IMG/VR virus record: IMGVR_UViG_3300017971_000001
Location: 181,277 to 245,276 of that record
Length of the DNA stretch: 64,000 nucleotides
Strand: one strand, 5' to 3'
In this document: one piece after another, positions 34,635 to 50,826 of the stretch
Position numbering within the stretch: position 1 is the stretch's first letter
Layout: the number at the start of each line of letters is the position of its first letter
Made by a program: the position numbers and the translations under genes
The notes under the pieces: model-generated
What the model saw: only the letters and a program-made list of their open reading frames with translations
Told to the model about the DNA's origin: nothing
Databases searched by the model: none

Positions 34635-34642
34635 GAGTTCGC

Positions 34643-34990: not shown

Positions 34991-34992
34991 AT

Positions 34993-35298: not shown

Positions 35299-35302
35299 AG
35301 CT

Positions 35303-35650
35303 ATGCCCGTCAACCCTTCCTGGCTTCAGTCCGTGCGCGAGAAGAACCGCGCCAAGTTCGGCATGGCCGGCATGAGTGGAGGTATGTCCGGGCTCGGAGA
35401 TCACAGCGCGCAGGCGCTGGTTGACGCGCTGAACGCGAGTCGCGACCAGCGCTCGGTGGCGCTCAAGAAGGCGGAGCCTCAGAAGGAATACGAGCAGGGC
35501 TCGGTGGAGTCGATCCTTCAGTCTCTGCCCGAACTCCAGGTTCAGCCGACGCCGGAGATTCCTCGCGGCGTCTTGTATGTGGGCGGAGCGATCGCGGTCG
35601 GCCTGACGCTCTTGATCGGGATCTCGCTGTTCCGAGGAGGTTCAGAATGA
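35303..35650 (+). CDS. Tail-anchored membrane protein
   Basis: GMAGMSGGMSGLGD; C-terminal TM. Confidence 0.75.
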   Translation: MPVNPSWLQSVREKNRAKFGMAGMSGGMSGLGDHSAQALVDALNASRDQRSVALKKAEPQKEYEQGSVESILQSLPELQVQPTPEIPRGVLYVGGAIAVGLTLLIGISLFRGGSE

Positions 35651-35964
35651 TCGGCCTGGGACAGTTCGACGAAGCCGCGCTCATGTCCAAGCAGCGCGAG
35701 CTCCAGAAGTTGCGCGCTGAGCGCGAGGCGCTGGAGGACGAAGTCGACGCGCTCCGAGTTGAGCTCTCGAAGCCGGCGCCTCGCCCGGAACTGGTTCGCC
35801 AGGCCTCTCCGGACGCGGCTCGGATCCCCGTGGTTCAGCAGGAGCGCGTGCCGCAGCAGCGCGGTCCGATCGTGGTCCCGCAGGCCCCTACTTCCCAGTT
35901 CGGCTTGATTGCTGCTGGCGTGGCGGCGCTCGGCGCCTTCCTCTACTTTCGCAGTCGAAAGTAG
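35647..35964 (+). CDS. Tail-anchored membrane protein
   Basis: MIGLGQ; C-terminal GLIAAGVAALGAFLYFRSRK. Confidence 0.75.
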   Translation: MIGLGQFDEAALMSKQRELQKLRAEREALEDEVDALRVELSKPAPRPELVRQASPDAARIPVVQQERVPQQRGPIVVPQAPTSQFGLIAAGVAALGAFLYFRSRK

Positions 35965-36013
35965 TTGGTGGCAGGGCCAGCAGACTTGCCTACGATCGAG
36001 CTAGGGAGTCTGT

Positions 36014-36547
36014 GTGAGCTACCTGACCATGAGCGACCTCGGCGCGCTGGGTCAGCAGCGGAGTGCTGCTGAACAGGCGAAGAGTGTCTGCGCACAGTTC
36101 AAACAGCGCGCGACCGACGAATCGCTGACTGAAAAGAAGCGACTGGCGGCCGAGCGTGGGTACTTGGCCTGCAAGAAGTCGTTCTTGAACAAGAAGAACT
36201 CGAGTCAGGCGGTTTCTGCCGGAAGGCTCCAAGAGGACATTTTCGAGACCGGACTCCTCCCCAGCGAGGAGCGCGCGATCGAGCGGAGGGCGAAGGGCGG
36301 CACGATCGACGTCGTCCCGCCGCCCGACTGGACGGTTCGCTCCGAAGGCAGCACCGCCGACGCCCTGGAGGACATTCGCCGCCAGGTCGAACTCCAGCGA
36401 CTCGAAGAAGAGCGGGAGCGAATGCGGCGTGAACTTGAGACCCTGCGAACACGGCCCTCGGGCACTGGTCTTGCCGTTGGAGCCGGAGCGGCCCTGGTTG
36501 TGGGCACTCTGGGCGTGATCGCGTTGTTGTTGCGGAGGGGTGCATGA
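36014..36547 (+). CDS. Tail-anchored membrane protein
   Basis: SDLGALG; C-terminal TM then RR. Confidence 0.75.
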   Translation: MSYLTMSDLGALGQQRSAAEQAKSVCAQFKQRATDESLTEKKRLAAERGYLACKKSFLNKKNSSQAVSAGRLQEDIFETGLLPSEERAIERRAKGGTIDVVPPPDWTVRSEGSTADALEDIRRQVELQRLEEERERMRRELETLRTRPSGTGLAVGAGAALVVGTLGVIALLLRRGA

Positions 36548-37590
36548 GCGGACTCGAACTGGGAATGGGCGACTACATGCAGGTCGGCCCGGCGGCTCGC
36601 TTCGTGGGGCCGAACGCCGCTCAGGTGATCATGCGCGGGCCGCACGGAATGCGTCTCGCTGCTGACCCGGTCAAGACCCGCGAGGGTCGCGTACGCGGGT
36701 CCGGCTTCCGCTTCTGGGCCGAGCAGGAGCTTCCCTTCCTGGAGAAGCACCAGTCCTGGAACCCCGGGGCTCGGGTCGTGGGGCTCATGGGGCTCTCTGG
36801 GTTGGGCCTGATCAAGGGGCCCGGCTATCGCTACACCGACAGCAACGACTGGAAGAAAAAGACCAATGAGGCGATCGGCCTCCTCGCCCGTCTCACCTAC
36901 GAGCCGAATTCCGGACGCGTGCCCATTTCTAGCGCCGTTCTCAGCGGCCTGAATGTCCAGATCTCAGCAATCGACAGGGTCCTCAAAAAGGACGAGTCGA
37001 ACACTCGGATCTCGGAGGCGGAGATCGGTCAAGCAGACCGGGCGCGCCAAAACGCGATCAACATTCTCAACAAGTATCGAAGCGATACCCGCAGCTTCAC
37101 TGGCCCGGTCAGCGACTCGATCAATGCTGTGATCGGTCATTTCAACAACGTCGCCAACTACCTCCTTGACGTTCAACACGCGCGGCGATACGACCGCAAG
37201 GACGAGTTCTCCGATCTCCGGGCTCAAGCCGCCATGCGAGACCGGGAGCAGAGTTCTCAACCGCAGGTCGATCGCGACACTCGCGAGACCAGTCTCGACA
37301 GCATTCGCGCTCAAGTTGCCATGCGGGAGGCCGAGCGCAAGGGGTCGAGCTCGAGCTCTACGAACCGAAGCCAGCCCGCCAAGGCGACCGATCCCTGGTG
37401 GCGCTCGAGCGCCAAGGAAAAGGCGCGCGAAGGAGGCCGCACGACGCTCGGCACCGACGAGCTCAAGATCTCACTCAACACGGGCGGGTCGGGTAGCGGC
37501 CTCAGCACGCCGGTCATGGTCGGCGTCGCGGTCGTCGGCACGCTCGGCGCCCTGGCGGCGCTCAAGGTCCTGATCGGAGTTCGTTCGTGA
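36544..37590 (+). CDS. Tail-anchored membrane protein
   Basis: LGMGDY and LSGLG; C-terminal TM. Confidence 0.78.
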   Translation: MSGLELGMGDYMQVGPAARFVGPNAAQVIMRGPHGMRLAADPVKTREGRVRGSGFRFWAEQELPFLEKHQSWNPGARVVGLMGLSGLGLIKGPGYRYTDSNDWKKKTNEAIGLLARLTYEPNSGRVPISSAVLSGLNVQISAIDRVLKKDESNTRISEAEIGQADRARQNAINILNKYRSDTRSFTGPVSDSINAVIGHFNNVANYLLDVQHARRYDRKDEFSDLRAQAAMRDREQSSQPQVDRDTRETSLDSIRAQVAMREAERKGSSSSSTNRSQPAKATDPWWRSSAKEKAREGGRTTLGTDELKISLNTGGSGSGLSTPVMVGVAVVGTLGALAALKVLIGVRS

Positions 37591-38072
37591 GTGGGCTCCT
37601 TATGAACCAACTCGGACTTCTGCCTTCCGGCTGGAAGTGTCCTTACTCGACTCGCTCCGAGCTCGAGCGCGAGATTAGCGCGCTCGAGGTCCGCGCCTCG
37701 AACATGGATCCCGAGGACGTCCGCGCTCGCACGGAAGAACTCCGCGAGTGCCACATGCAAATGAGCGGTCAGGCGACCTATCGCTCGCACAAGGAGCGCC
37801 TCGACCTCCTGCAGCGCGCTTCCATGATCGCCCGCGGCAAGAAGTTGGCGAACGTCGATTCGACCGGACGGTTCCACCCGGATCCCCGCACGAGCGTGGT
37901 CGACCACCTCCCTACTGCAATCGAAGAGCGGGCTGAAGAGTTGCTCGAGGCGGGCGAGCGGGCCTTCGAGGCGATCACCCCCACCACGACCACCAAGATC
38001 CTGATCGGCGTCGGCCTCGGCGTGGCCGGTCTCTACTTTCTCAACAGCATTCTCAAGACCCTGAAGGGCTAG
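37587..38072 (+). CDS. Tail-anchored membrane protein
   Basis: C-terminal ILIGVGLGVAGLYFL. Confidence 0.75.
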   Translation: MSGLLMNQLGLLPSGWKCPYSTRSELEREISALEVRASNMDPEDVRARTEELRECHMQMSGQATYRSHKERLDLLQRASMIARGKKLANVDSTGRFHPDPRTSVVDHLPTAIEERAEELLEAGERAFEAITPTTTTKILIGVGLGVAGLYFLNSILKTLKG

Positions 38073-38076
38073 AGCC

Positions 38077-38904
38077 ATGCCTCCACCGATCATTCCTTTC
38101 CAACCTCAGGGCGCTGGCTGGGGTCCCCGGACTCCGCAGCACTCTCTCTACCCCAGCTTTACCCCCAACTGGAGCCCTGCTCCGGAGATCCCTGGCACGA
38201 CGGAGCCCGGCGGGGGAATGGTCTCGTTTACGTCACAAGGAGTAGCCGGTATGAACGGCATGGGCGACATGTTCACCTACCCCCAGGGCACCAACCCGCA
38301 GGAGTTCTACGCGAACTCGATCCCCAAGTCCCCGATTCCGATTCCGCAGCAACAGGCTCCCTTCGAACCTCCGCACGCGGCGCGGGTCACCGAAGGAGCC
38401 ATGGCCTGGGAAATGTCCACGGCTCCCTTCGACCTGGCCCCTCCCGCTCCTGCGCTCGCCCCTTCGGCGGCACCCGCCAAGATCGCCGAGGTTCACGCCA
38501 TGGGCCGGGCCGCGAGTGAGGCCAAGGCGCTCGAGGCCGCCCAGGCCGCCAAGGTCGCTGCCGACAACGCGGTGCGCGCGGCCCGGGTCGGAGCACCTCA
38601 GGTCGCCAACACCAACGCCGCGACGGCTGAGGCCGCGGCCAACGTGGCTGCCGCCTCTGCCAAGACCCCCCAGGGCCAGAAGCTCGCCGCTACGGCTCAG
38701 GGTCATGCGACGAAGGCCAAGGCCGCGGCTCGGATCGCTGCCAACGGCGGGAGCAACGGCATGAGCGATTTCCTGGAGCTCAGCGGCATGCACGGCATGG
38801 GTGCCGGCATGAACTGGATCCAGAGCAACAAGTGGTGGCTCCTCGGCGCCGGCGCTGTGGCCCTCGGTCTCTACATGACCAAGGGCAAGTATTGGGGCAA
38901 GTAA
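38077..38904 (+). CDS. Pro/Ala-rich tail-anchored protein
   Basis: MNGMGD, GMSDFLELSGMHGMG; C-terminal WWLLGAGAVALGLYM. Confidence 0.78.
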   Translation: MPPPIIPFQPQGAGWGPRTPQHSLYPSFTPNWSPAPEIPGTTEPGGGMVSFTSQGVAGMNGMGDMFTYPQGTNPQEFYANSIPKSPIPIPQQQAPFEPPHAARVTEGAMAWEMSTAPFDLAPPAPALAPSAAPAKIAEVHAMGRAASEAKALEAAQAAKVAADNAVRAARVGAPQVANTNAATAEAAANVAAASAKTPQGQKLAATAQGHATKAKAAARIAANGGSNGMSDFLELSGMHGMGAGMNWIQSNKWWLLGAGAVALGLYMTKGKYWGK

Positions 38905-38907
38905 GCC

Positions 38908-39225
38908 ATGCAGCACTGGAAGGAACCCGCTCCGCTGGGCGAGGCACAGCGGATCGGATACACAAAGAACTCGGTCATGGCCATGCCCGCGGCCTCGGCG
39001 TCTCGCTCGCCGAGCATGTCGGCTTACATGGCCCCGATCGATCTCCCGCCGGTCGTCAACAGCCCTGGCCCCACTTCGGGCGGAGGTCTCGCTGGCCGCG
39101 TGGGTGACTTCGCGACCTCAGCGGGCGGATCGACCGTGACCCTCCTGCTCGGCCTGGCGGTCGGCTACTACCTCGGCAAGAACTACGAACTGTTCGCGGC
39201 TCGGCCTGCGGCAGAAGAGTTGTAG
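38908..39225 (+). CDS. Small membrane protein
   Basis: VTLLLGLAVGYYLG. Confidence 0.7.
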   Translation: MQHWKEPAPLGEAQRIGYTKNSVMAMPAASASRSPSMSAYMAPIDLPPVVNSPGPTSGGGLAGRVGDFATSAGGSTVTLLLGLAVGYYLGKNYELFAARPAAEEL

Positions 39226-39228
39226 TCC

Positions 39229-39531
39229 ATGGATCGACAGCAACCCTACACCCCGTGGGTCGAAGCGCCTACGGGCTTGACGGTTCCGCCTCGGCAGCTG
39301 CCGGCGGCGCACGTCAACCAGTTGAGCAATCCGCGCCTGCTCGAGCAGCAGCGCGGCATGGCCCAATTGGCGGTAGGTGCTGCTGGATTCCTCCTCGCCG
39401 GCTACCACGGCTACCGGCGGAACGACTCCTACCTCTGGGGCCTGCTGTGGGGTCTCGGCGGATTCACTTGTCCTGTGGTGACGATTCCGATCGCCATTTC
39501 GCAGGGTTATGCCAACCCACTCAAGGGGTAG
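39229..39531 (+). CDS. Small two-TM membrane protein
   Basis: LAVGAAGFLLAGYHG and LWGLLWGLGGF. Confidence 0.72.
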   Translation: MDRQQPYTPWVEAPTGLTVPPRQLPAAHVNQLSNPRLLEQQRGMAQLAVGAAGFLLAGYHGYRRNDSYLWGLLWGLGGFTCPVVTIPIAISQGYANPLKG

Positions 39532-39533
39532 TC

Positions 39534-41039
39534 ATGCTCAGCTTCAACGAGCTCCAGGGCTTTGCCCAGGCCCACTCTGGTGACTACCGGTTCGGGCTTG
39601 ACGGCCGGAAGAAGGCGTGCTGCAGCAGCTGCGCGCACAACGGTCCGTGTGAAGGCGACAGCCACCAGCACGGGCTCGGGCGTCCGATCGATATCAACGA
39701 CTGGAAGAAGTGGATTCGTCACGAAGAAGCCGACACCATGCCGCCTGGGTTCCCTCCCCCCGCCCGTAGCTTCAGCCCGGCCTTCTCGGGACTCCGTGGC
39801 GCTACGGTCCTTACAGGCGAAGGGGATATGGACGATCCTCTGGACGCGCCACCGCTCGGGTACAAGTACGTCCAGACCACCAAGCCAAACACGACGGTCA
39901 TGGCGAAGCCCATGGGCGTTGTTCCGAAGCAGAGGCGGCGCGACGTCACGCGCATGATCGAGGAGCTCGAGTTCCTCGCGGCGACCCCCGGCGTCCACCC
40001 TCGCGCCCTCGCTTCCAAGATCTGGCAGGCGCGCAAGGCGCTCATGGAGAGCCAGGACTGGAGCTACGCCAGCTACAGCAATCCGCGCATGCGCTACGAC
40101 AGCAAGCGCGATCTGGAGGCGCGCCTTGCCTCGGTCGAGCGAGTCCTGGGTGTGGGCGACGTCAGCCCCAAGACCTTCGCGTTCTTCTACGGCATGGGCG
40201 GTCTGGGCAGGTGGCAGGGCCAGCAGGATCCGATCAAGAAGCTCGCGCAGTGCATTCAGGGGGCGATCTGCTTCCCGAAGGGCTACTGCTGCCCGTCTGG
40301 GACGCACTTCGACGAGCCCTACTACGACGACCCGCTCTACTTCGATCAGGGCTATCCCGAATACCCTGAGTACGGATACCCGGAGACCGGCGATCCTCGC
40401 CTTCCGCCGCCCATGGGCGACCCGCGTCAACCCCCTCCCTTCTTCGAGGAGACGTGGGGCGAGCCGCGTCGTCCGGGTGAGACCTATATCCCCGGACCCA
40501 AGTTGACCGAGCGCGGCCCCGTTACCTCGATCCCGGGCGCTCCGATCACGAGCATTCCTGGCGGATCGATCGGACCCGCCGGCGCCATTTCCACCGGCGG
40601 TGGAAAGATCGGACCTGCGAACGCTGGCCTGATCGCTGCGGGCGGGGTCGCTTCCGGTGCCGCGGCATCCATGCCCAACTCGGGCGCCGGTCCTGGCTCG
40701 ATCCTTCCTGGCGGAACGAAGACTTCGACTTCGACGGGCGGATCGCTTTCGGTGGACGAGGCGGTCAAGGCAGTCTCCATGCCGAATCAAAAGAAGTCCG
40801 TTCAGCTGCTCAAGCCAGGCACGGGAATCCTTTCGCGCCCGTATGTCGGCGCGCCCGAGCTCGTGCAGACGGGCCCTTCGGCTCAGGACTTTCAAGAAGC
40901 AGAGCGTCAGCGCCGCGCCGCTCGTCCCGGTTGGGGCGGAGGCGACGGCGGCGGAAGCATGGTCTCCCTGGGAGGCCTCTCTGCCCTGCAGCACAGCATG
41001 AACGCGGCCCGCATTGCGGCTCGCCGCCGGCGGAGGTGA
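39534..41039 (+). CDS. Cys/Pro/Gly-rich putative virion protein
   Basis: ATG 39534; CCSSCAHNGPC, MGGLG, CIQGAICFPKGYCC; Arg tail. Confidence 0.75.
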   Translation: MLSFNELQGFAQAHSGDYRFGLDGRKKACCSSCAHNGPCEGDSHQHGLGRPIDINDWKKWIRHEEADTMPPGFPPPARSFSPAFSGLRGATVLTGEGDMDDPLDAPPLGYKYVQTTKPNTTVMAKPMGVVPKQRRRDVTRMIEELEFLAATPGVHPRALASKIWQARKALMESQDWSYASYSNPRMRYDSKRDLEARLASVERVLGVGDVSPKTFAFFYGMGGLGRWQGQQDPIKKLAQCIQGAICFPKGYCCPSGTHFDEPYYDDPLYFDQGYPEYPEYGYPETGDPRLPPPMGDPRQPPPFFEETWGEPRRPGETYIPGPKLTERGPVTSIPGAPITSIPGGSIGPAGAISTGGGKIGPANAGLIAAGGVASGAAASMPNSGAGPGSILPGGTKTSTSTGGSLSVDEAVKAVSMPNQKKSVQLLKPGTGILSRPYVGAPELVQTGPSAQDFQEAERQRRAARPGWGGGDGGGSMVSLGGLSALQHSMNAARIAARRRRR

Positions 41040-41047
41040 GAAGAGAT

Positions 41048-42079
41048 ATGAAGCGACGCATTCGTAAGAACCCTTGGTTCAGCCCTCCGGCCATGCAGTA
41101 CGTGGCGCGGTTTACTCCGCCCCTCATGCTCAACCCGCCTCGGAGCAATCCGCGGGTCTACGGCGACTACGGCCCGCCGGCGCTGCCCCCACGGCGCAAC
41201 CCTCGGGTCTATGGTGACTACGGCCCGCCGGCGCTGCCCCCGCGGCGCAACCCTTCCCAGGTCTACTCGATCAGCTGCGACGGCGAGCACGTCGACTTGA
41301 TCCGCGCGACCTCGCCCGGCAAGGCTCGCTCGATCGCCTCCAAGCGTCACGGCATTCCCTTTCTCGAGCTCGACGTCATGGCGACCGGGGCGGCGAACCC
41401 TCCCCGCGCTCGCAAGATCGACCTCAAGGGAGACTTCCCGCTCATGAACAAGCGCCACCGACGGCGCCCGCGTTACTCGACCTATCGGACTGAAGACGTC
41501 GAGCGGCACATGCGCTACCCGCGCCGGCGTCGCTTCGATCCCGAGCCGGTCGGATACCGGGATAACCCCTGGGTCACCATGTACGGCCCGCGGCACACCG
41601 GCCCCTTCCAGCGCAAGCGCGACGCGCGGGACTTCGCTGACACGCGTCGGGGGCGCTACGGCGAGCACCACTCGGTTCACCGGCTCTACTCGCCGGGCGG
41701 GCAGTATGGTCGTCGCTCGCCGCATGTTCCGATCAAGCGTCGGCGCAACCCGGCCTACGGCGACTACAGTCCGCCTGCGGCCCCCTACGGCATGAATCCC
41801 CGGGGCCGGGGCGGGAAGCCTTCGCTTCACAGGGCGGCCGCCGCTGCTTCTCGTCGCGCTGCTCGGAAGATCGACGAGATCCTCAGCCAGATCGCCGAGA
41901 TTCCCAGTCTCACGATCCGTGATATCGAAGACGTGGTCGACGGCCTCCTCCACGTTCACGCTGGCCGAATTCTGCGCAAGCACAAGCTCTCGAGGTCGCG
42001 TCACAGCGATATCGAGCAAATGATCTCGGACGCGCTTTCGTATCGCAGCGAGGCCTACAACGAGATCATTCTCCGCTAA
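41048..42079 (+). CDS. Arg-rich NP-repeat protein (putative genome-condensing core protein)
   Basis: Nine NP dipeptides including RKNP, RSNP and three RRNP. Confidence 0.8.
   Translation: MKRRIRKNPWFSPPAMQYVARFTPPLMLNPPRSNPRVYGDYGPPALPPRRNPRVYGDYGPPALPPRRNPSQVYSISCDGEHVDLIRATSPGKARSIASKRHGIPFLELDVMATGAANPPRARKIDLKGDFPLMNKRHRRRPRYSTYRTEDVERHMRYPRRRRFDPEPVGYRDNPWVTMYGPRHTGPFQRKRDARDFADTRRGRYGEHHSVHRLYSPGGQYGRRSPHVPIKRRRNPAYGDYSPPAAPYGMNPRGRGGKPSLHRAAAAASRRAARKIDEILSQIAEIPSLTIRDIEDVVDGLLHVHAGRILRKHKLSRSRHSDIEQMISDALSYRSEAYNEIILR
41147..41254 (+). repeat. 51-nt tandem duplication (NPRVYGDYGPPALPPRR x2)
   Basis: NP codons at 41147, 41198 and 41249; a third degenerate copy near 41748. Confidence 0.85.
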
Positions 42080-42142
42080 TGGATCGGGTCGTCCGCCGAG
42101 CAGTTCGCTACTTGCTCCTAGAGAGCCTTGAGGGGTAAAACA

Positions 42143-43492
42143 ATGCACCGACGCGAATACAACCCCCGCTACTCGTTCTCCGAGCCGCGCCCAAACCCTG
42201 ATTGGCACCCGGGCGGTGGCATGCGGATCGGGGGTCGGTATCGCCCTGGCAGCGGACGCTTCCATGCGCACCGCGGATCGGGCTATCGCCACGGCGGCGG
42301 CCGTCGCTACGACGGCGAGTACTACCCCGGCGGTGGCTACTACCCCCAAGCCAATCCTGCGGTCGCCGGTATTCAGATCGGCGACAAGGTCATGCCGGCC
42401 TCGCGCTTCCATGCGCGCCGCTGCCCCTTCGTGCGCGGCCGCGTCGTCGACCTGAAGCACAAGAAGTACGGCGACCTCGCTCGCGTCGAGACAGAAGACG
42501 GTCGGATCGTGACCGTCACGCTCGACACGATCAAGCGCTGCGGCATGCGCACGCGCAGCAACCCGCGGCGTGTCCGTCGCAACTGGGTCCCCAGTCACTG
42601 GAACGAGTGCGAGTCCTGCGGCAACCGGTGCTATCCGCACGAGCGCCTGTGCGTCTACTGCGAGCAGGCTGAGTTCGATCGCCTGCCGGGTCATATGACC
42701 GAGCTCAAGCGTTGCCCGAAGTGCGACCGCTTCGCATGCCTCGGCGGGCGTCACTGCAAGCCTCGGCCTCGCGGTTCTGGCCCCGGCCCCTACCTCGAGA
42801 ACCCTTACGCCTCCAGGGCGAAGGCGAAGGAACTCGCGCGCCTGGTCGAGTCCAAGCCAGGAATCCGCAAGATCGCTCGCCGGACCTACAGCCACGGCAC
42901 GGTCCCCCGCGAGGTCGAGTGCGAACTCGAGCCCCTCGGGCCGTCCATGCTGCTCGGTAGTCGTCGCTACGGGCGGACCAAGGGTGGCATGGTCGACTCC
43001 TACGCCAAGGAGTTCGACTTCCCTGCCCCCAACGAAGAGGAGCGGAAGTTCGTTGTCTGCAAGGGCGCGAACGAAATCGAGGCTGTCGCTGACGCATTGC
43101 CTCCGGGCCGCGGCTTCAAGAAGCGGCTTGAGTCCGCGCTCTCGACGAAGCGCTTCCAGGGCAAGCTCCCCGTGCAGAAGCGAATCGATCGAATCATGAA
43201 GGGCGGCATGCTGACGCAGCGTCAGACGACTGCGTTCTTGAAAAGCACGGACGCTGATCGCCTCTACGAGTTGGCGGAGCTCAAGCGCCGGGTCGACCGC
43301 GTCTTCTACCCGAGTATGCGGAAGCTGCTCATGCACGAAGAGGTTTCGGAGAAGCTGAGGCCCGCCCCGGCCCGCAAGAAGCGTTCGACCAAGAAGAAGG
43401 CTGGCAAGAAGGTCAGCAAGAAGAAGGTCGCCGCCGCTAAGAAGAAGGCCAAGAAGAAGACGACCAAGAAGCGTCGCCGGCGGGGTGCTTAA
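42143..43492 (+). CDS. Basic NP-segmented protein with SH3/KOW-like and Cys-finger modules and Lys tail
   Basis: NP junctions separate a Gly/Tyr region, IQIGDKV..GRVV..VTV, CESC/CVYC/CPKC and a KK-rich tail. Confidence 0.78.
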   Translation: MHRREYNPRYSFSEPRPNPDWHPGGGMRIGGRYRPGSGRFHAHRGSGYRHGGGRRYDGEYYPGGGYYPQANPAVAGIQIGDKVMPASRFHARRCPFVRGRVVDLKHKKYGDLARVETEDGRIVTVTLDTIKRCGMRTRSNPRRVRRNWVPSHWNECESCGNRCYPHERLCVYCEQAEFDRLPGHMTELKRCPKCDRFACLGGRHCKPRPRGSGPGPYLENPYASRAKAKELARLVESKPGIRKIARRTYSHGTVPREVECELEPLGPSMLLGSRRYGRTKGGMVDSYAKEFDFPAPNEEERKFVVCKGANEIEAVADALPPGRGFKKRLESALSTKRFQGKLPVQKRIDRIMKGGMLTQRQTTAFLKSTDADRLYELAELKRRVDRVFYPSMRKLLMHEEVSEKLRPAPARKKRSTKKKAGKKVSKKKVAAAKKKAKKKTTKKRRRRGA

Positions 43493-44775
43493 TGGCCGCT
43501 CGCAAGAAGCGCGCCAAGCGCGCCAAGAAGAAGGTTCCGGGGCCGCGTCGGTATCACATTGAGCGCGCTATGGGCTGGGTCGATCACGGACTCGCTCACC
43601 CGGGCGAGCACGAGCACGCTTTGCGCGAGGCGCACGATCACCTGGTCCATGCCAAGCAGGCAAGGCGGAACCCTCGCCGTCTACCCGTGCGCAGCAACCC
43701 CATGCTGGCAGTTGTTGGCAATCCGCCTCGGCGTCGTCGCGTTCGCCGCAACCCCATGCTCGCGATCGTCGGGAATCCGCACGAAGAGGAAATGACCCCG
43801 GGCGCCATGCGCCGCCGGATCACCGAACTCAAGCTCGAGCTTGACGACGCGAAGTACTTCAAGCACTCGCCTATGCGGATCGCAGGACTCGAAGACGAGA
43901 TCGCCGAACTCGAAGACGCGCTTGACGCTGCAGAGGAACAGTTCGAGCGTAGGTCGCGCGCTGGACTTTCTCGCTCTCGCGTTGAAGACGAGCGCCGCCG
44001 TGAGCGCGAGCGCTACATGCGCGATCGCCGGCGCAACCCGCGTCCTGAAGTTCACCCGCTCGCCTACGAAGCGCGCCGCCGTTACCACGAAGACCTCATG
44101 GCAGGCCATGGAGACGCCGCTGAATACTGGCGCGGCCAGGCCGGGGCGTTCTTCACGGACGCGGTTCACCCCGACTACATGCGCGAGATCTACGAACTCG
44201 AGCAGCGCGAACTCGAACGCCGGAACCGAAACGCGACTGGCAAGCGCGCCAAGAAAAAGTCTGGCCGCAAGGGTGGCAAGAAGTCCAAAAAGCAAGTTGC
44301 AGGGCCAGGCGGACGGGATAGCTTGAAGAAAGAGGGCAGGAAGGTTCGCAAGAATCGGACTGCAGGGAAGTCCAAGAAGGCGAAGCCAAAACTCAAGCGC
44401 TACACGCTCGAGGAAGCCAGGAAGAAGTTCGAAGGATTCGACGAAGCGCTGAAGGCCTACAAGCGTTTTCACAAAGCGAATCCGAGCCACGTCGACGTCT
44501 ACGAAATTGACGACGGCAAGCCTGGCAAAACGGTTGACCGAGTTCATGCAGCACTCCACCGGACAGTCGAAACCAACTACCTCGTGCCTGACGGCTGGGA
44601 GTCCAACAAGAATGGCTCCCTCTGGAAGCACGAGCACGTTGAAGGCTTCAGCCTCGACAACCCCGTTGGCGAACCTGATCCGGAAGACTTCCCGCTCGAA
44701 GTGCTCGACCCAGCAACCGGCACGACTCGCAAGTTCGGCGGTCGCTTCCGCGTCACGACGTGGTGGTACGACTGA
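43492..44775 (+). CDS. Basic NP-repeat protein
   Basis: Eight NP; duplicated R(S/R)NPMLA(V/I)VGNP; TAATG overlap. Confidence 0.8.
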   Translation: MAARKKRAKRAKKKVPGPRRYHIERAMGWVDHGLAHPGEHEHALREAHDHLVHAKQARRNPRRLPVRSNPMLAVVGNPPRRRRVRRNPMLAIVGNPHEEEMTPGAMRRRITELKLELDDAKYFKHSPMRIAGLEDEIAELEDALDAAEEQFERRSRAGLSRSRVEDERRRERERYMRDRRRNPRPEVHPLAYEARRRYHEDLMAGHGDAAEYWRGQAGAFFTDAVHPDYMREIYELEQRELERRNRNATGKRAKKKSGRKGGKKSKKQVAGPGGRDSLKKEGRKVRKNRTAGKSKKAKPKLKRYTLEEARKKFEGFDEALKAYKRFHKANPSHVDVYEIDDGKPGKTVDRVHAALHRTVETNYLVPDGWESNKNGSLWKHEHVEGFSLDNPVGEPDPEDFPLEVLDPATGTTRKFGGRFRVTTWWYD

Positions 44776-44787
44776 GCGAGGTGCGCT

Positions 44788-46641
44788 GTGTATCTGATCC
44801 CTGTTCTCAATCCGCCGCCCAGCGCCATGCCCCTCGCTGGGACCAAGACGAAGCGCAAGCCCAAGCGGGCCGCGCCCAAGAAGACCAAGTCGGCCGGGAG
44901 GAAGTCCGTGGCTAAGAAGAAGGTTCGCAAGAACAGCAGCCGCAAGCGCACGAGCAGCTACTCCGGTGGCCGCGCTCAGCGCAAGCGCTACCCCAGCGGC
45001 AAGCGCCGCAACCTGACCTGGGTCGAGGCTGCGCGATCGTCTGGCGCGGTCTACACGCCGAACTCGCTCATGACCAAGAAGGACGGCCGCGGTCGGCTGA
45101 AGTTCGTCCCGGTCACGAGCGGCAAGGTCGGTAAGCCCATGTCGAAGCAGGACGCGCTCGCGGCCAAGCGCCCGGTCGTCGGCTTCCTACCCAAGTGGCT
45201 GATCGACTTCTGGTACGACTCGGGCGCTGCGGACATGAAGACCGCGCGTCAGCAGAAGAGCAAGAAGTACAAGGACGCGGTCCAGTACTTCAACGCGGCC
45301 CAGAAGGCGCTCGCCGAGCAGCGGAAGAAGCGCGGCACCAGCTGGAAGCGCGCGACCCAGTACAAGACCAAGGGCCGCGGCAAGAACAAGAAGAAGGTCC
45401 GGGTCCCGGACTTCGAGATCCTGGACGACGGCTCGGTCAAGTTCCGATCGGGCCGTGGTCCCAAGACGTCAATCACCCTGTTTCGAGGCTTTGCTCCGTC
45501 GGAGGTGCAACAGCGGCACCTCATTGAAGGCGGTTTCGCGGGCAAGGCTGGACCTGGAGGAGGTCGCGTGAAGCTGAACCGAAAGCGGAAGCGCCGGGCG
45601 AAGGTTCGCAAGAACCCGGCGCGTAAGAAGAAGGCCGTGAGCAAGAACAAGCCACGGCGTAGCAAGAAGAAGACGAAGAGTCGGAAGAAGAGCCGCCGTC
45701 GCGCGGTCCTGAACAACCGGCCCAAGTCCAAGCGTCGGAAGAAGGCGACGAAGCGCAAGGCCGCGCGCCGCAAGAGCACGAAGCGTCGGAAGAATCCTGC
45801 GCGCAGCCGCAAGCGGCGCGTGCGGAAGAACCCGGCTCGCAAGTCGCACTCGCGCAAGCGTCGTCGTCGCAAGAGCAGCGCTCTGAGCCGGGTTCGCCAG
45901 AACCCCATGGGCGCGACCAAGAAGAACCCCATGGGCGCGCTGAAGCAGTACCTCGACAAGCTGCAGACCGCTTCGCCCTACGTCACTGGCGCTCACCTCG
46001 TGATCGGCATGGGCGTCAGCGGGCTCTTCTGCGGCGGTCTCCGTCAGTTCCCCGTCGTCGGGCGGATCTTCAGCCTTCGTGGTCGTTACCTGGGCGCCGC
46101 CGGCCGTTTCGCCGGTTGCCTCGGCGCGGCTTCGCTGGCTGGCCTGACCGGAACCCTGCTCGAGCGCACCCTGGGCAAGAACGTCAAGTTCCTCCAGAAC
46201 GCTGGCGGCAACTTCTTCGTGGCTGGTGTCGCCCTCGCGGTCGGCAACCTCCTCCTCGAGCTCATTCCCGGCGCCTCGTCGATCCTGCCTGGGATCAGCA
46301 ACCCCCGCGGCATGCGCACCATGCGGCACATGTCCATGGCGGCTCCGGCCGGCGAAGAGGGCATGGGCAGCTACGGCAGCAGCGTCCTGAGTCCCGAGGA
46401 CCTGGTCGCTGGCGAGTCGAGTGCCCGTCTGACCAACGAGTTCCACGGCATGAGCGACTTCCTGGAGCTCAGCGGCATGGGCTCGTCGGGCGGTCAGCCG
46501 ATTCCGATCGAGGACCTGCGCGGCTACCCCGGCTGGTATGGCGGTGGCAACTCGATCTCGGGCATGGGCGACTACATGGAGCTCAACCCGACCGCTCCCC
46601 TCGTCACCGACGGGTTCAACCCCGGCACCGAGAACTTCTAG
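44788..46641 (+). CDS. Very basic NP-repeat protein with hydrophobic segment and C-terminal G(M)G motifs (core-precursor-like)
   Basis: Three RKNPAR, RQNPMG, KKNPMG; LSGMG and ISGMG near the C-terminus. Confidence 0.8.
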   Translation: MYLIPVLNPPPSAMPLAGTKTKRKPKRAAPKKTKSAGRKSVAKKKVRKNSSRKRTSSYSGGRAQRKRYPSGKRRNLTWVEAARSSGAVYTPNSLMTKKDGRGRLKFVPVTSGKVGKPMSKQDALAAKRPVVGFLPKWLIDFWYDSGAADMKTARQQKSKKYKDAVQYFNAAQKALAEQRKKRGTSWKRATQYKTKGRGKNKKKVRVPDFEILDDGSVKFRSGRGPKTSITLFRGFAPSEVQQRHLIEGGFAGKAGPGGGRVKLNRKRKRRAKVRKNPARKKKAVSKNKPRRSKKKTKSRKKSRRRAVLNNRPKSKRRKKATKRKAARRKSTKRRKNPARSRKRRVRKNPARKSHSRKRRRRKSSALSRVRQNPMGATKKNPMGALKQYLDKLQTASPYVTGAHLVIGMGVSGLFCGGLRQFPVVGRIFSLRGRYLGAAGRFAGCLGAASLAGLTGTLLERTLGKNVKFLQNAGGNFFVAGVALAVGNLLLELIPGASSILPGISNPRGMRTMRHMSMAAPAGEEGMGSYGSSVLSPEDLVAGESSARLTNEFHGMSDFLELSGMGSSGGQPIPIEDLRGYPGWYGGGNSISGMGDYMELNPTAPLVTDGFNPGTENF

Positions 46642-46657
46642 AGCTCTCGGCCCCAAC

Positions 46658-46690
46658 GACTCTGAGCGGGTTCGCTTTCCGCTCCGAGTC
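46658..46690 (+). promoter_or_regulatory. Stable hairpin in the leader upstream of the capsid gene
   Basis: GACTC-T-GAGCGG/CCGCTC-C-GAGTC. Confidence 0.45.
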
Positions 46691-46856
46691 GCGACTCCGG
46701 ACTTTGGCCAACATTCACGTCTGCTTGCTGTGTCATGAGGGCGCAGTGCTACTCGGCGGCAGTGCAGATTTGAGGCCAGGAATGAAGCGTCAGGATTGGC
46801 GCGCCTGGTAGCCAAGATTGGGTGACCTCGGGAGAGGCCCCACAGGAGTTTTTCGC

Positions 46857-47495
46857 ATGACCATGCGCGTTGTCCCCATTCCCGCGATCGGCGCCGTTGG
46901 CAGCCGCCCCCGCAAGGAGCCGATCTACGACACTGAGGGTTGGGCTCCGGCCGTCCCCCAGCCGTCCGAGATCGTCACCTTCGTCAACTTCTCGGGCTTC
47001 AACACTGGTGGCCTGTCGCTGCAGAAGTCCTTCGGCCGCGACACCAATCTGCAGGGTCAGAATGGTCTGCCCGCTGCACACCACCACTACTGGTATGGCC
47101 TGCGTGTCAAGATCCGCTCGCTCGACGCGGACCTCGGCACGGCCGCCAACGTCGTGGTGTTCGAGGAGATCAACCGGATCCGTGAGCTCGGCTTCACCCA
47201 GTTCCGGTTCGCCAGCAGCGAACTGATCACCGTGCAGGCGGACGAGGCCCCCAGCGGCACCGGCCCCGCCTACGCGAACACGACCCACTCGGCCGCGACG
47301 ATCCTGTCGCTCCCGAGCGGCGTGCCCACCCGCGGAAACGCGAAGGACGTCACGATCAGCGGCCGCCCGGTCGAGATCGTGGCCCTCGAGGCCTTCCGTG
47401 TCGTCTACGGCACCCCCACCGGGATCACCCCGACCGTGTCGCTGTACTGCAGCGTGATCCTCGAGGGTCTGCTGCTGCGCGGAATCACCGGCTAG
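46857..47495 (+). CDS. Single jelly-roll-like capsid protein (candidate major capsid protein)
   Basis: AGGAG RBS, ATG 46857; PIYDT..RDTNLQGQNGLP..YGLRV..LEGLLLR beta-rich pattern; strong terminator after it suggests high expression. Confidence 0.62.
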   Translation: MTMRVVPIPAIGAVGSRPRKEPIYDTEGWAPAVPQPSEIVTFVNFSGFNTGGLSLQKSFGRDTNLQGQNGLPAAHHHYWYGLRVKIRSLDADLGTAANVVVFEEINRIRELGFTQFRFASSELITVQADEAPSGTGPAYANTTHSAATILSLPSGVPTRGNAKDVTISGRPVEIVALEAFRVVYGTPTGITPTVSLYCSVILEGLLLRGITG

Positions 47496-47570: not shown

Positions 47571-49205
47571 ATGAAAGGTCTTCTTCTTCGAGTGACGATA
47601 GGCTCGATCCCTAGAAGGAGGCTCTGCATGAAGTGGAGAGGTCAGACTTTTGAGGGTGAGTCTTTCTACCTTCTTGGCTTGATAGCTGCGGACGGATACG
47701 TGGCGAAAGAAGGGGGAAGCAACCAAAGCAAGGTGTCGATCAACTGCGGCAATTCCGCCGGAGATCAAAAGTTCGCAAAGTATGTCGCCCGCTTGATTGA
47801 TTCAACGTGGGGGCAGAGATTCGGATTTTCATGCACGCTTCGCCATGTGGATCGGAGGCCGCCTCGCGTTCCTTACTGGGAGCCCCATTGCTGCTCCAGG
47901 TCCTTGGCAGGCGCCATTAGGAAATTTTGCGAAGGTCGAATCGGAACGTATTCCTGGCGAATCCCGCCCGCCCTCTTGAGGAGTCCTGGGCCTGAGCTTT
48001 TGTCTTGGATCCAGGGCTTCGCGGACGGAGACGGGACCGTATCCGTCAAGCCGCCCAAGAGGGAGGTGAGAATTTCAAGTGTGAACCGAGAGGGGATTGA
48101 AGATATCAGGCGCGCCCTGTCTCACTTTTCAATCAGCGCGAAAGTTTACGAGCACGATCGCGAGATCGAAAACTGGGAGCCCTCTATAAACATAGTCATT
48201 TGCGACCGCCGCTCGCTTGAGATCTACGCTCAGAAAATCGGATTCCGCCAACCCGACAAGAAGCGCAAGCTCGCCGAGGCGCTTGCGTCCTACAAGCGCG
48301 ATCATGCCAACCTACTTCGACATGAGGTCGAAGATCTGCTGCCCGAAGTGATCCGCAGGCGAGCATGCGGCGAGTCCTTCGCTGAGATCCAGGAGGCGCT
48401 CGAGCTCGCAACCGTCGAAGTTCCTAAGGGCATGCTCAAGCGCGCCGTTCGCTCTGCCAGGGGCAAGTGTGTCGTCTGCCTCAAGTCCCCTGCCACGCAC
48501 TCGATCCCCCGCGTGGTCCGAGGGCGGAGCGGCAAGTATGCCTGCGATCCGTGCCTGATCGAGCTCGAGCCCAAGGAGGAATGGGGCGAGGAGTTCGTCC
48601 AGCTGAAACTTCGAGAGGTTGCAGATTTCCTCGACGAGAACCATTACCTCGGGCGCCGCTCGAGCCGGAACGCGTTCGCGCTGCGGAACAAGCACGGCGT
48701 GCTCGTATTCTCCCGCAAGCCTCAGGCGAGCTCGCTCCCCCGTGACTGGCTCGAGCTCTCGCGCTGGTGCATTGTCTCGGACGACATGAACGCGGGGACG
48801 AAGCAGTGGTCTCGCGCCAAAGCTTGGCTTCGCGAGAACACCGAAGCGACGACCGTCGTCACCTACTCCGATCCGTCCCGGCACGACGGATCGCTGTATC
48901 GAGCGGCAGGGTTCCTTTGGGCTCCTTCTTCTCAGTTCCTGCTCAAGAACTTGTCGCTCACTGGGGAGCGTCACCCGGGCAAGCCTTACGTGGACAAGAA
49001 CCGCTGGGTCTACCCGCTTCGACCCGACGCCCGGCGCGCCGAGGCGCTGACGGTCCGTCACCCTTGGCTTTACAACAGCGACGAGCTCAAGTTCCTCTGC
49101 GACTGGCCGGAGCCGAAGTGGCGCGGTCGCGGCACTCGCTTCTCCGGCGGCGGCAAGGACTACCAGCGCTGGAAGGAGCTTCTCCAGGAGCGATCGAACT
49201 CCTAG
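47571..49205 (+). CDS. LAGLIDADG endonuclease-like domain fused to a Mom-like (GNAT-fold) DNA-modification domain
   Basis: YLLGLIAADG and WIQGFADGDG; CVVC..CDPC; FLDENHYL..LELSRWC..VVTYSDP..HDGSLYRAAGF; start may be ATG 47628. Confidence 0.72.
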   Translation: MKGLLLRVTIGSIPRRRLCMKWRGQTFEGESFYLLGLIAADGYVAKEGGSNQSKVSINCGNSAGDQKFAKYVARLIDSTWGQRFGFSCTLRHVDRRPPRVPYWEPHCCSRSLAGAIRKFCEGRIGTYSWRIPPALLRSPGPELLSWIQGFADGDGTVSVKPPKREVRISSVNREGIEDIRRALSHFSISAKVYEHDREIENWEPSINIVICDRRSLEIYAQKIGFRQPDKKRKLAEALASYKRDHANLLRHEVEDLLPEVIRRRACGESFAEIQEALELATVEVPKGMLKRAVRSARGKCVVCLKSPATHSIPRVVRGRSGKYACDPCLIELEPKEEWGEEFVQLKLREVADFLDENHYLGRRSSRNAFALRNKHGVLVFSRKPQASSLPRDWLELSRWCIVSDDMNAGTKQWSRAKAWLRENTEATTVVTYSDPSRHDGSLYRAAGFLWAPSSQFLLKNLSLTGERHPGKPYVDKNRWVYPLRPDARRAEALTVRHPWLYNSDELKFLCDWPEPKWRGRGTRFSGGGKDYQRWKELLQERSNS

Positions 49206-49383: not shown

Positions 49384-50826
49384 ATGCCCGCTCACACGTC
49401 CACGGTCAGCCAGGGCTGGGGAGCCACGCACACCTGCGCCTACTGCCATGGCTTCGGCAGCATTCCGCCCCTGATTCGCGGCAGCGACGGGCGAATGCAT
49501 ATCAATCCCGACTACGAAATGGTGAAGCGGTTCCACCTCGCCGCTGAGCCGTTCGGGGAGACGCTCGGACCTGGCGAGTCGCGCACGTTCACGTTCACGG
49601 TTCCCGCCGAGGAGGAAGGTCTGGGCGACCTGCTGGTCAACGAGTTCTTCGCGCTCTACGAGCCCGAGGGGATCCGCAACGTCTTCGTCGACTTCCTCAA
49701 CCTGCAGACCGATCGCCTGTTCCAGAACGCGCCCGTCCCCACGACGCTGATCATGGGCAACGCGCACCTCAACACCTGCCTGCCCTGCTGTTTCCTGATC
49801 CAGGCGACCAACAGCCTGCAGGTTCGCGTGCGCAACGAAGAGTCGACCGACATTCAGGTTCGTCTCGTCGCCCGCGGCAAGCGCTTCCTGACTCGCGACC
49901 ACGAACTCCGCGCGCGCATGCTCCAGTACTGGAACATGCTCCCCAGCTACAGCTACTTCCTCACACTCGACGAAGAGGAGGTTGTGGTCCCTGCCGGAGA
50001 GACCGTCAGCGCGACCATGAAGGTTCCTGGCCACGGAGACTTCGAAGTCAAGTGGCCGCGCTGTGAAGTGCTGAACGCGGCGACGGGCGCGCAGGAGAAC
50101 GCCAACGGCATTCTGGTCACCGTCGCCGAAGGGATCGGTCGTCAGTGGCAGAGTGATCCGCTCCCGCTCGGCGCGTTCGTCGCGACACCGACGCTCGACG
50201 TGGCCGGGTTCCCGGGCGGGATCTACCGCGCTGCCAGCGCTGGCCACTGCCCCAGCTACACCCAGCTGTTCAAGCGAAACACGTTCGTCCGTCACACGTT
50301 CGAGAACACGAGCGGCACCGACCTGATCGTTCGTCTGACCTACGCTGGCTGCTTCCACCAGGTCGACGAGTGCCCGCCCGGACGCTCGATCGATCGGATC
50401 CGCAGTCTCGAGCCGACGATCGGTCCCATGCTGATCCCGCAGGGCGACTACTGCGCCCCGCAGCAGCAGTACTACCCCGAGGAGCCCTTCTACAACGAAG
50501 AGCCGATCTATCAGTCCCCTCAGGCTTCGGGCGGAATGCAGCCGCCTGCTCAGCAGCCGGGCGGGAGCGCGATCTTCACGACGGTCCCTGGCGGAGCGGG
50601 CTCGGTCCAGGCTGGCGGCCCCAGTAGCTACGTCCCCAAGTACTACGAGGCCGGCGGCGGCGGCATGGCCGTCCCTAAGGCTGAGATCGCCAAGGCGCAC
50701 GGCCTCAAGCCCGGCCAGGTTTACGCTCCCGGCTTCCGCGGAATGCAGGGCATGGGCGCTGGCCCTGTGATCCGCCGCGGGCCCTACGTCTGGGATCCGA
50801 TCGCTCGGACCTGGAAGCGAGGCTAG
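49384..50826 (+). CDS. Double jelly-roll-like capsid protein, paralog 1
   Basis: Two similar beta-rich halves each ending ..L..(R/A)G(K/C)(R/F); NAPVP..IMGN..LP..LQVRVRN; C-terminal MQGMG. Confidence 0.7.
   Translation: MPAHTSTVSQGWGATHTCAYCHGFGSIPPLIRGSDGRMHINPDYEMVKRFHLAAEPFGETLGPGESRTFTFTVPAEEEGLGDLLVNEFFALYEPEGIRNVFVDFLNLQTDRLFQNAPVPTTLIMGNAHLNTCLPCCFLIQATNSLQVRVRNEESTDIQVRLVARGKRFLTRDHELRARMLQYWNMLPSYSYFLTLDEEEVVVPAGETVSATMKVPGHGDFEVKWPRCEVLNAATGAQENANGILVTVAEGIGRQWQSDPLPLGAFVATPTLDVAGFPGGIYRAASAGHCPSYTQLFKRNTFVRHTFENTSGTDLIVRLTYAGCFHQVDECPPGRSIDRIRSLEPTIGPMLIPQGDYCAPQQQYYPEEPFYNEEPIYQSPQASGGMQPPAQQPGGSAIFTTVPGGAGSVQAGGPSSYVPKYYEAGGGGMAVPKAEIAKAHGLKPGQVYAPGFRGMQGMGAGPVIRRGPYVWDPIARTWKRG

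Follow-up and report, generated by a model that had tools for sequence, protein, structure and literature searches.

A Gly-(Leu/Met)-Gly motif shared by probable virion proteins of an undescribed 245-kb virus with a predicted double-jelly-roll capsid

Many complex viruses mark a large set of virion precursors with one short sequence that is read by a virus-encoded protease. In adenovirus, the cysteine protease AVP recognizes (M/I/L)XGG|X and (M/I/L)XGX|G sites in capsid, membrane-lytic, and basic core precursors, and cleavage at one of these, IVGL|G, frees the 11-residue peptide pVIc (PMC4246237). In phage T4, otherwise unrelated internal proteins share a short capsid-targeting leader that serves both targeting and cleavage, since the serine prohead protease gp21 removes it after Glu in L/I-x-E during maturation of an HK97-fold head. 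Among the other double-jelly-roll viruses, ASFV (GG|X) and poxviruses (AG|X) cut Gly-rich sites in core and membrane proteins with cysteine proteases of the Ulp1/adenain clan, and C-terminal trimming of the double-jelly-roll capsid protein is reported for mavirus (PMC6048507); these viruses infect eukaryotes. In Bacteria, transglutaminase-like cysteine proteinases (Peptidase_C93) with a Cys-His-Asp triad cut at small-residue motifs; LapG is periplasmic and Ca dependent and cuts one adhesin at a di-alanine site. Double-glycine bacteriocin leaders are N-terminal amphipathic segments that end in small residues and are read by papain-fold C39 peptidase domains. We are aware of no shared leader or cleavage system of this kind for membrane-containing double-jelly-roll viruses of prokaryotes, whose described members are mostly about 10 to 20 kb.

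We analyzed a 64,000-nt stretch of DNA (the window) corresponding to positions 181,277 to 245,276 of the 245,276-bp virus record IMGVR_UViG_3300017971_000001. An earlier note, made from the sequence alone, had reported the same 11-residue cassette (GMSDFLELSGM) in two otherwise unrelated genes, together with related GMGDYM(E/Q) and GMGDMF sites. We could confirm this observation. The stretches at 38758-38790 and 46447-46479 match at 32 of 33 nt and differ only at the Asp codon (GAT against GAC), and both encode the cassette in frame. A search that allowed 3 mismatches found just these two sites in the window, whereas 100 dinucleotide-preserving shuffles gave none (0 expected by chance). BLAST over the whole record extended the match to 35 nt at 97%. 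The three proteins that carry the related sites (designated P0001, P0002, and P0003) share nothing alignable outside the motif and have no Pfam or PHROG family. In a six-frame scan of the whole genome, G-M-[SG]-D-[FYM]-[LMF] occurred five times, and all five sites lie in these three ORFs. The arrangement is not an assembly artifact: a 72-kb contig from a run of another study carries all three sites, although this run may itself be a source of the window's DNA, and contigs of an 88-95% identical relative from other runs carry both copies too. The sites, the genes that carry them, and the neighboring genes are as follows.

36544-37590, plus strand: P0003 gene, a tail-anchored protein with an N-terminal motif.
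36562-36585, plus strand: N-terminal motif of P0003 (MSGLELGMGDYMQV; GMGDYMQV), 36/45 nt like the second P0002 copy; other lineages have LGGFL.VGP here.
38077-38904, plus strand: P0001 gene (275 aa), an Ala-rich helix protein with two motif sites and a C-terminal hydrophobic anchor plus basic tail.
38257-38274, plus strand: site A of P0001 (GMGDMF); GMGD[MF]F.[YF]P is nearly invariant in 21 homologues.
38758-38790, plus strand: cassette copy in P0001, 10-20 residues before the C-terminal membrane anchor; conserved as NGM[GSN]D[WF][ML]ELSG[LM]G in 21 homologues.
44788-46641, plus strand: P0002 gene (617 aa), with a very basic N-half (net charge +116), Gly/Ala-rich hydrophobic segments at 400-500, and a conserved C-terminal tail with 3-4 G-M-G sites.
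46447-46479, plus strand: cassette copy 1 in the C-terminal tail of P0002; conserved in 4 homologues at 35-96% identity.
46561-46584, plus strand: half-cassette copy 2 in P0002 (GMGDYMEL); conserved as G[ML][GN]D[WY][MLIV]E[LM].
31400-32176, plus strand: transglutaminase-like (papain-fold) Cys-His-Asp enzyme, candidate processing protease.
32164-39531, plus strand: tandem array of at least 10 genes for tail-anchored proteins (single C-terminal TM helix), most with G-[LM]-G within about 30 residues of the N terminus, for example, at 34103, 34670, 35390, and 35653; the same array is found in the loci L019, L020, L021, and L023.
49384-50826, plus strand: paralogue of the capsid protein (480 aa), with DNA similarity to the 498-aa gene; its C-tail carries GMQGMGAG.
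50830-52326, plus strand: capsid protein with a modeled double-jelly-roll fold.
52311-53117, plus strand: 268-aa protein with a basic N-terminal region carrying SGMGS, possibly a vertex or minor capsid protein (a guess from its sequence and position, not modeled); a homologue in locus L032 has KGMGS.

The earlier note had named a search of related genomes as a way to probe the cassette and its absence or lack of conservation there as grounds for doubt. This search found the cassette conserved in relatives of two unrelated protein families at 35-50% identity, as GMxD[WF][ML]ELSG[LM]G, and both copies are among the best conserved parts of these families. The cassette consists of two G-[LM]-G cores nine residues apart. 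Given identical peptides and the codon usage of this genome, independently chosen codons would give at most 1 nt mismatch with a probability of 0.002, and the DNA identity therefore exceeds what peptide conservation explains. In the lineage of the window both copies changed together, synonymous codons included, so a patch was copied between the genes. In the same lineage, the aromatic position changed from Trp to Phe or Tyr in three separate copies.

Next, we examined the distribution of the core. G-[LM]-G occurs 21 times in the gene module of the window against 5.2 expected from composition, while the rest of the genome has 65 against 50. The core, usually with Leu/Met two residues upstream, lies within the first 45 residues of 42 of 97 module proteins across five related viruses, compared to 12 of 303 ORFs elsewhere in this genome. 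These enrichment counts pool homologous proteins from related viruses, so their P values are inflated. Leu/Met/Ile stands two residues before the first Gly in 54% of 113 sites, against a 14% background. This gives [LM]-x-G-[LM]-G in capsid, membrane, and basic proteins, which is the same pattern as the adenovirus motif (M/I/L)XGX|G at the level of sequence only. In the capsid protein model the N-arm and C-tail sites lie in low-confidence ends, whereas the one internal GLG lies in the folded core; the motif is conserved in homologues of this protein.

The module contains, besides the tail-anchored array and very basic proteins, two paralogous double-jelly-roll capsid proteins. The AF2 model of the capsid protein had a mean pLDDT of 81, with values over 90 for most of residues 30-330, and gave Z scores of 10.8 to STIV MCP, 10.1 to PRD1 P3, and 8.9 to PM2 P2 and PBCV-1, with about 210-245 residues aligned; cellular DUF2961/GH172 chains score the same. 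As for an FtsK/HerA-type packaging ATPase, we observed only a weak FtsK_SpoIIIE match (E 0.014, 11.7 bits) in a Walker-A ORF at genome positions 108607-109563 and no Pox_A32 match, which does not settle whether such an enzyme is encoded. No terminase, portal, HK97 capsid, or prohead protease was detected with PF03237, PF03354, PF04860, PF05065, or PF04586 at E <= 1; only these models were tried, so divergent versions are not excluded. The leaders end in G-[LM]-G and not in x-E as in T4.

The transglutaminase-like ORF reaches the Pfam cutoff for PF01841 (23.5 bits against a cutoff of 23), has C168, H203, and D222 invariant in 5 homologues, and matches viral Transglut_core clusters with an Atlas feature score of 0.96 and a TM of 0.83. 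It stands upstream of the array in every relative fetched that reaches this part of the module, and in one relative an intein-like insert sits exactly at the catalytic Cys. The AF2 model of the enzyme is poor (pLDDT 53) and its Foldseek matches to PDB entries are not significant; LapG and a C93-containing cluster appear among the weak structural and feature matches. Transglutaminase-fold enzymes also cross-link, deamidate, or deglycosylate, and protease function is therefore assumed; the fold alone does not decide between peptidase and cross-linking or amidase activity. Searches of the 245-kb genome returned no match for the clan CE peptidases C5 (PF00770) and C48 (PF02902) at E <= 1, and no S78 or C39 (PF03412) peptidase was detected.

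The cassette is best read as the extended, doubled form of a short linear motif with the core [LM]-x-G-[LM]-G that lies in disordered terminal segments of the structural proteins of a large virus that probably has an inner membrane. The carriers are the N termini of the tail-anchored inner-membrane proteins, both ends of the capsid protein, the tail of a basic DNA-binding-type protein (P0002), and the juxtamembrane region of P0001. We propose that all of these sites are read by one partner, most likely the transglutaminase-like enzyme encoded at the head of the same array, which would cleave at or next to the G-[LM]-G during assembly. The extended part (D-[WF]-[ML]-E-L-S) would serve as a docking helix or exosite, so that the element could both target and be trimmed, as the T4 capsid-targeting sequence does, and where two cores flank it, as in P0001 and P0002, cleavage would release a peptide of about 9 residues. 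We assign this reading a probability of about 0.45. What the analysis itself demonstrates is the motif with its conservation and positions, the fold family and catalytic triad of the enzyme, the capsid fold as modeled, and the concerted change of the copies; that the enzyme is a protease, that it recognizes the motif, and that cleavage occurs are our inferences, as no cleavage has been observed and there are no proteomic or structural data. Compared to adenovirus, the enzyme has a transglutaminase/papain-like fold instead of adenain, the capsid protein itself carries sites, the virion probably has an inner membrane, and the host, although unknown, is taken to be prokaryotic; a Gly-based site with Leu/Met at P4, its spread over many virion proteins including basic core-type proteins, a double-jelly-roll capsid, a single virus-encoded cysteine enzyme, and a short peptide that could be freed are common to both. 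The interpretation given in the earlier note, that the cassette is a portable signal peptide bounded by G(M)G sites, copied between virion genes, and possibly excised or docking to the capsid or protease, is supported in part. The element is portable, built around G-(L/M)-G sites, and copied between genes in this lineage, and the genes sit in a virion module with capsid genes and a protease-like enzyme. However, it is not a signal peptide in the secretion sense, nor is it confined to three genes, since it is the longest form of a module-wide motif that also occurs at the N termini of most tail-anchored proteins and at both ends of the capsid protein. Whether a peptide is excised, and whether the partner is the protease or the capsid, has not been tested.

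An uncleaved docking motif is less likely but is not excluded. Its short amphipathic segment could plug into a common site on the inner face of the capsid lattice or on an assembly factor, tethering the inner membrane (through tail-anchored proteins of graded length) and the DNA-binding P0002 to the shell; membrane-containing double-jelly-roll viruses such as PRD1 and PBCV-1 link membrane and shell through minor proteins. Twelve conserved residues, aromatic and acidic ones among them, are more than most protease sites need and fit a binding motif at least as well, and the segments between the sites in the P0002 tail are themselves conserved, which is odd for pieces that would be cut apart. The motif sits at the membrane-distal N-terminal tip of coiled-coil tail-anchored proteins of about 100 to 640 residues, and the joint change from Trp to Phe/Tyr in three copies would be expected for coevolution with one pocket. 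The same change also speaks for a shared reader. Peptide docking to the capsid proteins and protease had been suggested beforehand to identify the partner; the one complex prediction that was run gave no verdict. On the other hand, the capsid protein carries the motif at both of its own ends, and so does the penton-like protein, which is less expected for a ligand of the capsid, and the conserved protease-like enzyme would be left without a role.

The remaining alternatives appear very unlikely. N-terminal leaders such as M-x-L-T-M-x-E-L-S-G-L-G resemble the bacteriocin leader L-S-x-x-E-L-x-x-I-x-G-G, which could point to an export signal removed by a host or viral C39-type peptidase-transporter; however, besides the lack of a C39 match in the genome, no ABC transporter domain was found among the module proteins scanned, and the motif also occurs internally and at C termini, on large capsid and tail-anchored proteins that are not exported peptides. 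The P0001 family ends with motif, hydrophobic helix, and Lys-rich tail, as in sorting signals of the sortase, exosortase, or rhombosortase type, but the spacer to the helix is 10-20 residues and the same motif occurs at N termini and at the extreme C terminus of P0002 with no helix after it; no sorting enzyme was looked for in a host, because the host is unknown. A nucleotide-level element or a neutral gene conversion patch would fit the excess DNA identity and the retention of GAGCTC in most copies. This is contradicted by the pattern of synonymous changes: across lineages the differences inside the cassette are mostly synonymous (GGC/GGT/GGG/GGA, GAC/GAT, TCG/AGC, and CTC/CTG) while the peptide is kept, and in a roughly 93% identical relative the only change inside the cassette is CTG to TTG, both Leu.

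A more far-reaching reading, which we consider possible but less likely than not, is that this record and its metagenomic relatives represent an undescribed clade of very large (245 kb) bacterial viruses. They would have a double-jelly-roll capsid, an inner membrane studded with a dozen tail-anchored proteins, histone-like basic core proteins, and an adenovirus-like maturation system in which a nonhomologous transglutaminase-fold protease cuts [LM]-x-G-[LM]-G sites across the virion, with the 11-residue cassette as an excised or regulatory peptide. That would be a convergent, or very ancient, counterpart of adenovirus, ASFV, and poxvirus maturation in the prokaryotic branch of the lineage.

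Shared leader or cleavage motifs are how complex virions such as those of adenovirus, T4, poxviruses, and ASFV sort and mature dozens of proteins. Here, a simple, searchable motif labels the likely virion proteome of a 245-kb virus whose structural genes have no family annotation. It gives a direct handle for annotating virion proteins in this clade, for testing whether a transglutaminase-fold enzyme acts as a maturation protease, and for asking whether Gly-site maturation in this capsid lineage is ancient or convergent. The concerted change of the copies is also a clean small case of a peptide motif moving between genes by patch copying.

To examine whether the repeated cassette is real, we searched the 245,276-bp virus record, which has direct terminal repeats and is the same as JGI metagenome contig Ga0180438_10000045. 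The window is bases 181277-245276 of this record. The two 33-nt stretches reported in the earlier note matched at 32 of 33 nt, no third site was found in the window within 3 mismatches, and none appeared in 100 shuffles. Both stretches encode GMSDFLELSGM in frame, and the related sites named in that note were also found, so that its observation holds. The sites are located as follows:

38758-38790, GMSDFLELSGM, in protein P0001 (38077-38904)
46447-46479, GMSDFLELSGM, in protein P0002 (44788-46641)
46561, GMGDYMEL
36562, GMGDYMQV, in protein P0003
38257, GMGDMF

In a six-frame scan of the whole genome, the six-residue pattern shared by these sites occurred only at these five places. None of the three proteins has a Pfam or PHROG family, and searches of both collections with 20 module proteins gave nothing for the motif carriers. 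Profiles of the P0001, P0003 and candidate protease families searched against PDB sequences also gave nothing useful. A whole-genome overview of protein families was dominated by collagen repeats. The terminal repeat is an exact 123 bp (genome 1-123 and 245154-245276), and a separate 103-nt exact repeat links two distant places outside the window (52438 and 88736).

Next, we asked whether the cassette is kept in relatives, since its absence or lack of conservation there had been named in advance as a result that would speak against it. No relatives were found in IMG/VR by scans with P0002, with the back-translated cassette or with the P0001 alignment, and a scan of JGI metagenomes returned only 2 further loci. 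However, a word-index search of a large protein index yielded homologs of all three proteins. In the P0002 family (4 sequences, down to 35% identity), the C-terminal tail is the best conserved part and carries G[MV][SG]D[FW][LM]ELSG[LM]G and a second copy, G[ML][GN]D[WY][MLIV]E[LM]. The P0002 homolog of the relative L032 (L032:12987-14600) appears frameshifted between the two motif copies, with copy 2 in another frame, which may be a sequencing error or a real truncation. In the P0001 family (21 sequences, about 45-55% identity), both GMGD[MF]F.[YF]P and NGM[GSN]D[WF][ML]ELSG[LM]G are nearly invariant; the second lies 10-20 residues before a C-terminal hydrophobic helix and a Lys-rich end, and one member has the cassette twice in tandem. 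The N terminus of the P0003 family reads L-[GS]-G-F-L-x-[VI]-G-P in most of the other lineages (LGDALHVGP in one) and is thus a looser relative of the motif. The cassette is therefore neither absent nor unconserved in relatives. Window positions 38000-47000 are found in full in sediment and seawater metagenome runs of separate studies, although all three runs with the full stretch are possible sources of this DNA, and in part (93% relative) in a hydrothermal-vent metagenome, whereas no RNA run contained the stretch.

The cassette proved to be the long form of a module-wide motif. From 32164 to 39531 the window has a tandem run of at least 10 genes whose products each have one TM helix at the very C terminus, i.e., tail-anchored proteins, several of them with long Glu/Arg-rich coiled coils and Pro/Gln-rich linkers. 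The same array, conserved in order, occurs in the four related contigs L019, L020, L021, and L023. The N termini of these proteins begin M-[SA]-x-L and carry G-[LM]-G-[DQ] within about 30 residues; examples are MSGLTLGLGD, HQLHGLGN, GMSGLGD, and MIGLGQ in the window and MGALTMQELSGLGQ and VSFLTMNDLSGLGD in relatives. The last two are close to the cassette's WMELSGLG, and the cassette therefore consists of two such cores nine residues apart. The window module contains 21 G-[LM]-G sites compared to 5.2 expected from composition, while the rest of the genome has 65 compared to 50. Over five viruses, 42 of 97 module proteins have the core in their first 45 residues, compared to 12 of 303 elsewhere in this genome. 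Leu, Met, or Ile stands two residues before the first Gly in 54% of 113 sites, against a 14% background. These sites include homologs from related viruses, and the formal P value therefore overstates the evidence; the direction is nevertheless clear.

To identify the nature of the module, we modeled the 498-amino-acid (aa) protein encoded at 50830-52326, which has 50 relatives in a library of 1.8 billion representatives. With 47 of them aligned, AF2 gave a mean pLDDT of 81, and over 90 for most of residues 30-330. An exhaustive structural search placed viral double-jelly-roll capsid proteins at the top together with their known cellular look-alikes, with about 210-245 residues aligned (189 for phiCjT23), and Foldseek agreed.

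Table. Structural matches of the model of the 498-aa protein (match, Z)
GH172, 11.2
STIV MCP, 10.8
DUF2961, 10.6
PRD1 P3, 10.1
PM2 P2, PBCV-1, and EhV-201, 8.9
phiCjT23, 8.1
Faustovirus, 8.0

The 480-aa gene just upstream is a paralog of this predicted capsid gene (DNA similarity families D6 and D16), the two together spanning window positions 49384-52326. Downstream lie small proteins, which were not modeled, and two collagen-like proteins. The genome gave no match to the models tried for Terminase_6N, TerL_ATPase, Phage_portal, HK97 Phage_capsid, or the S78 prohead protease. A high-GC3 block at genome 157-171 kb, considered as a possible head module, turned out to hold recombination and replication genes. 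A Shine-Dalgarno-like signal precedes 44% of open reading frames (ORFs), compared to 15% of random sites, and the other recognizable genes are of bacterial mobile-element type (RusA, Erf, integrase, TnpB-like, Mom); the host is therefore prokaryotic. We read these findings as a very large membrane-containing virus with a double-jelly-roll capsid, possibly an unusually large tailless virus of a prokaryote. As this reading rests on one good model and on absences, we assign it a probability of about 0.75. Several proteins between the membrane-protein array and the capsid genes are extremely basic, with net charges of +32 to +116. Further features of the module and the genome were as follows:

Window 40931-44775 and genome 26-736, a cluster of extremely basic proteins (net +32 to +69) with tandem repeats such as RRNPRVYGDYGPPALPP (41135-41236) and RRNPMLA.VGNP (43672-43779), one with a weak match to the histone-H1-like HC2 family
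Window 47571-49205, a Mom-like DNA-modification protein interrupted by a LAGLIDADG homing-endonuclease/intein-type domain, a combination also found in the relative L018
Window 54025-55463 and genome 1265-6225, collagen-like G-P-T repeat proteins with C-terminal beta-rich domains next to the capsid genes, and two large collagen-repeat proteins at the genome start, followed by glycosyl- and methyl-transferases and a patatin-like phospholipase
Genome 108607-109563 (-), outside the window, a 318-aa ORF with very high GC3, a Walker A motif, and a weak FtsK_SpoIIIE match (E 0.014), a candidate packaging ATPase
Genome 143401-146787 (-), outside the window, an SNF2-family helicase interrupted by an intein with a LAGLIDADG domain, which with the Mom-like gene makes two intein or homing-endonuclease insertions in this genome

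The predicted capsid proteins carry the motif as well. In the 498-aa family, the N-arm has Y-G-M-G-D-C at about residue 14, and the C-tail has [SN]-G-L-G followed by G-E-W-E-x-[IL]. Both are kept in most of the closer homologs, and both lie in the low-confidence ends of the model. The 480-aa paralog ends with GMQGMGAG, and a 268-aa protein has SGMGS in its basic N-terminal region.

A candidate reader of the motif, a transglutaminase-like enzyme, is encoded by an ORF at 31400-32176, just upstream of the membrane-protein array, where it stands in every relative fetched that reaches this part of the module. This ORF reaches the Pfam Transglut_core cutoff (23.5 bits against 23), and Cys168, His203, and Asp222 are invariant in 5 homologs. 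Its Atlas features (0.96) and Atlas model (TM 0.83) match clusters of viral Transglut_core proteins, one of which also contains Peptidase_C93. Our own AF2 model, built from 5 sequences, was poor (pLDDT 53), and its Foldseek hits (the putative protease BDI_1141, PNGase, TglA, LapG, TGase, and ComA C39) all had E values above 0.04 and are not significant. No adenain, Ulp1, C39, or S78 peptidase was found in searches of the genome. In the relative L021 (L021:1942-3006), an insert of about 115 residues sits exactly before the catalytic Cys of the enzyme; it looks like an intein, and inteins are often found at active sites.

Thus, several facts call for explanation: sites in disordered ends of capsid, membrane, and basic proteins; a hydrophobic residue at a P4-like place; Gly at P2- and P1′-like places; and one conserved papain-fold Cys-His-Asp enzyme in the module. 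We favor, tentatively, a shared recognition and cleavage signal. Its pattern matches the adenovirus protease motif (M/I/L)XGX|G, for example, IVGL|G, which frees the 11-residue pVIc (PMC4246237); however, the enzyme family is different. The extended cassette could add docking, as the T4 capsid-targeting sequence does, and where two cores flank D[WF][ML]ELS, a short peptide could be released. While the sites and their placement were observed directly, recognition by the enzyme and cutting are inferences, and nothing here shows cleavage. A complex prediction with residues 60-258 of the candidate protease and residues 535-617 of P0002 scored 0.01 against a mark of 0.32, which gave no verdict and is not evidence either way. 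An uncleaved docking motif remains a serious rival, as the conserved part is long and sits at the membrane-distal tip of tail-anchored proteins of graded length. A Sec signal peptide, a lipobox, sortase-type sorting, and a DNA-level element were considered and dropped. The proposal in the earlier note of a portable signal peptide, bounded by G(M)G sites and copied between virion genes, is supported in part.

Finally, we compared the cassette copies between lineages to test for copying between genes. In L019, L032, and L014 the cassette reads GMGDWMELSG[LM]G, with Ser encoded by TCG, and this holds in both families where both are present. The window, its 88-95% relative (L018, L028), and the roughly 93% relative in the vent metagenome differ in that every copy observed reads GMSDFLELSGM, with both Ser codons AGC; the window and the L018/L028 relative show this for both genes. 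A further contig, L031, ends just inside the P0002 homolog and gave no additional paired genome. The difference amounts to four amino acid changes and a three-base synonymous change shared by two genes 7.7 kb apart. With independent codon choice, the chance of at most 1 nt mismatch is 0.002, and a patch of about 35 nt was therefore copied between the genes in this lineage. Only one lineage shows the derived state, so that this is one event and not a trend. A second patch is likely: the P0003 N terminus in this lineage (GMGDYMQVGPAARFV) matches P0002 copy 2 (GMGDYMELNPTAPLV) at 36 of 45 nt (DNA similarity family D18), while most other lineages have LGGFL.VGP there. Across lineages, the differences inside the cassette are mostly synonymous, indicating that selection acts on the peptide.

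Literature searches on large prokaryotic double-jelly-roll viruses and on transglutaminase-like maturation proteases found no description of such a virus or motif, which is not proof of absence. A shared leader or cleavage motif on virion proteins is in itself an established kind of device; what is new here are the motif, the enzyme fold proposed to read it, and the type of virus.
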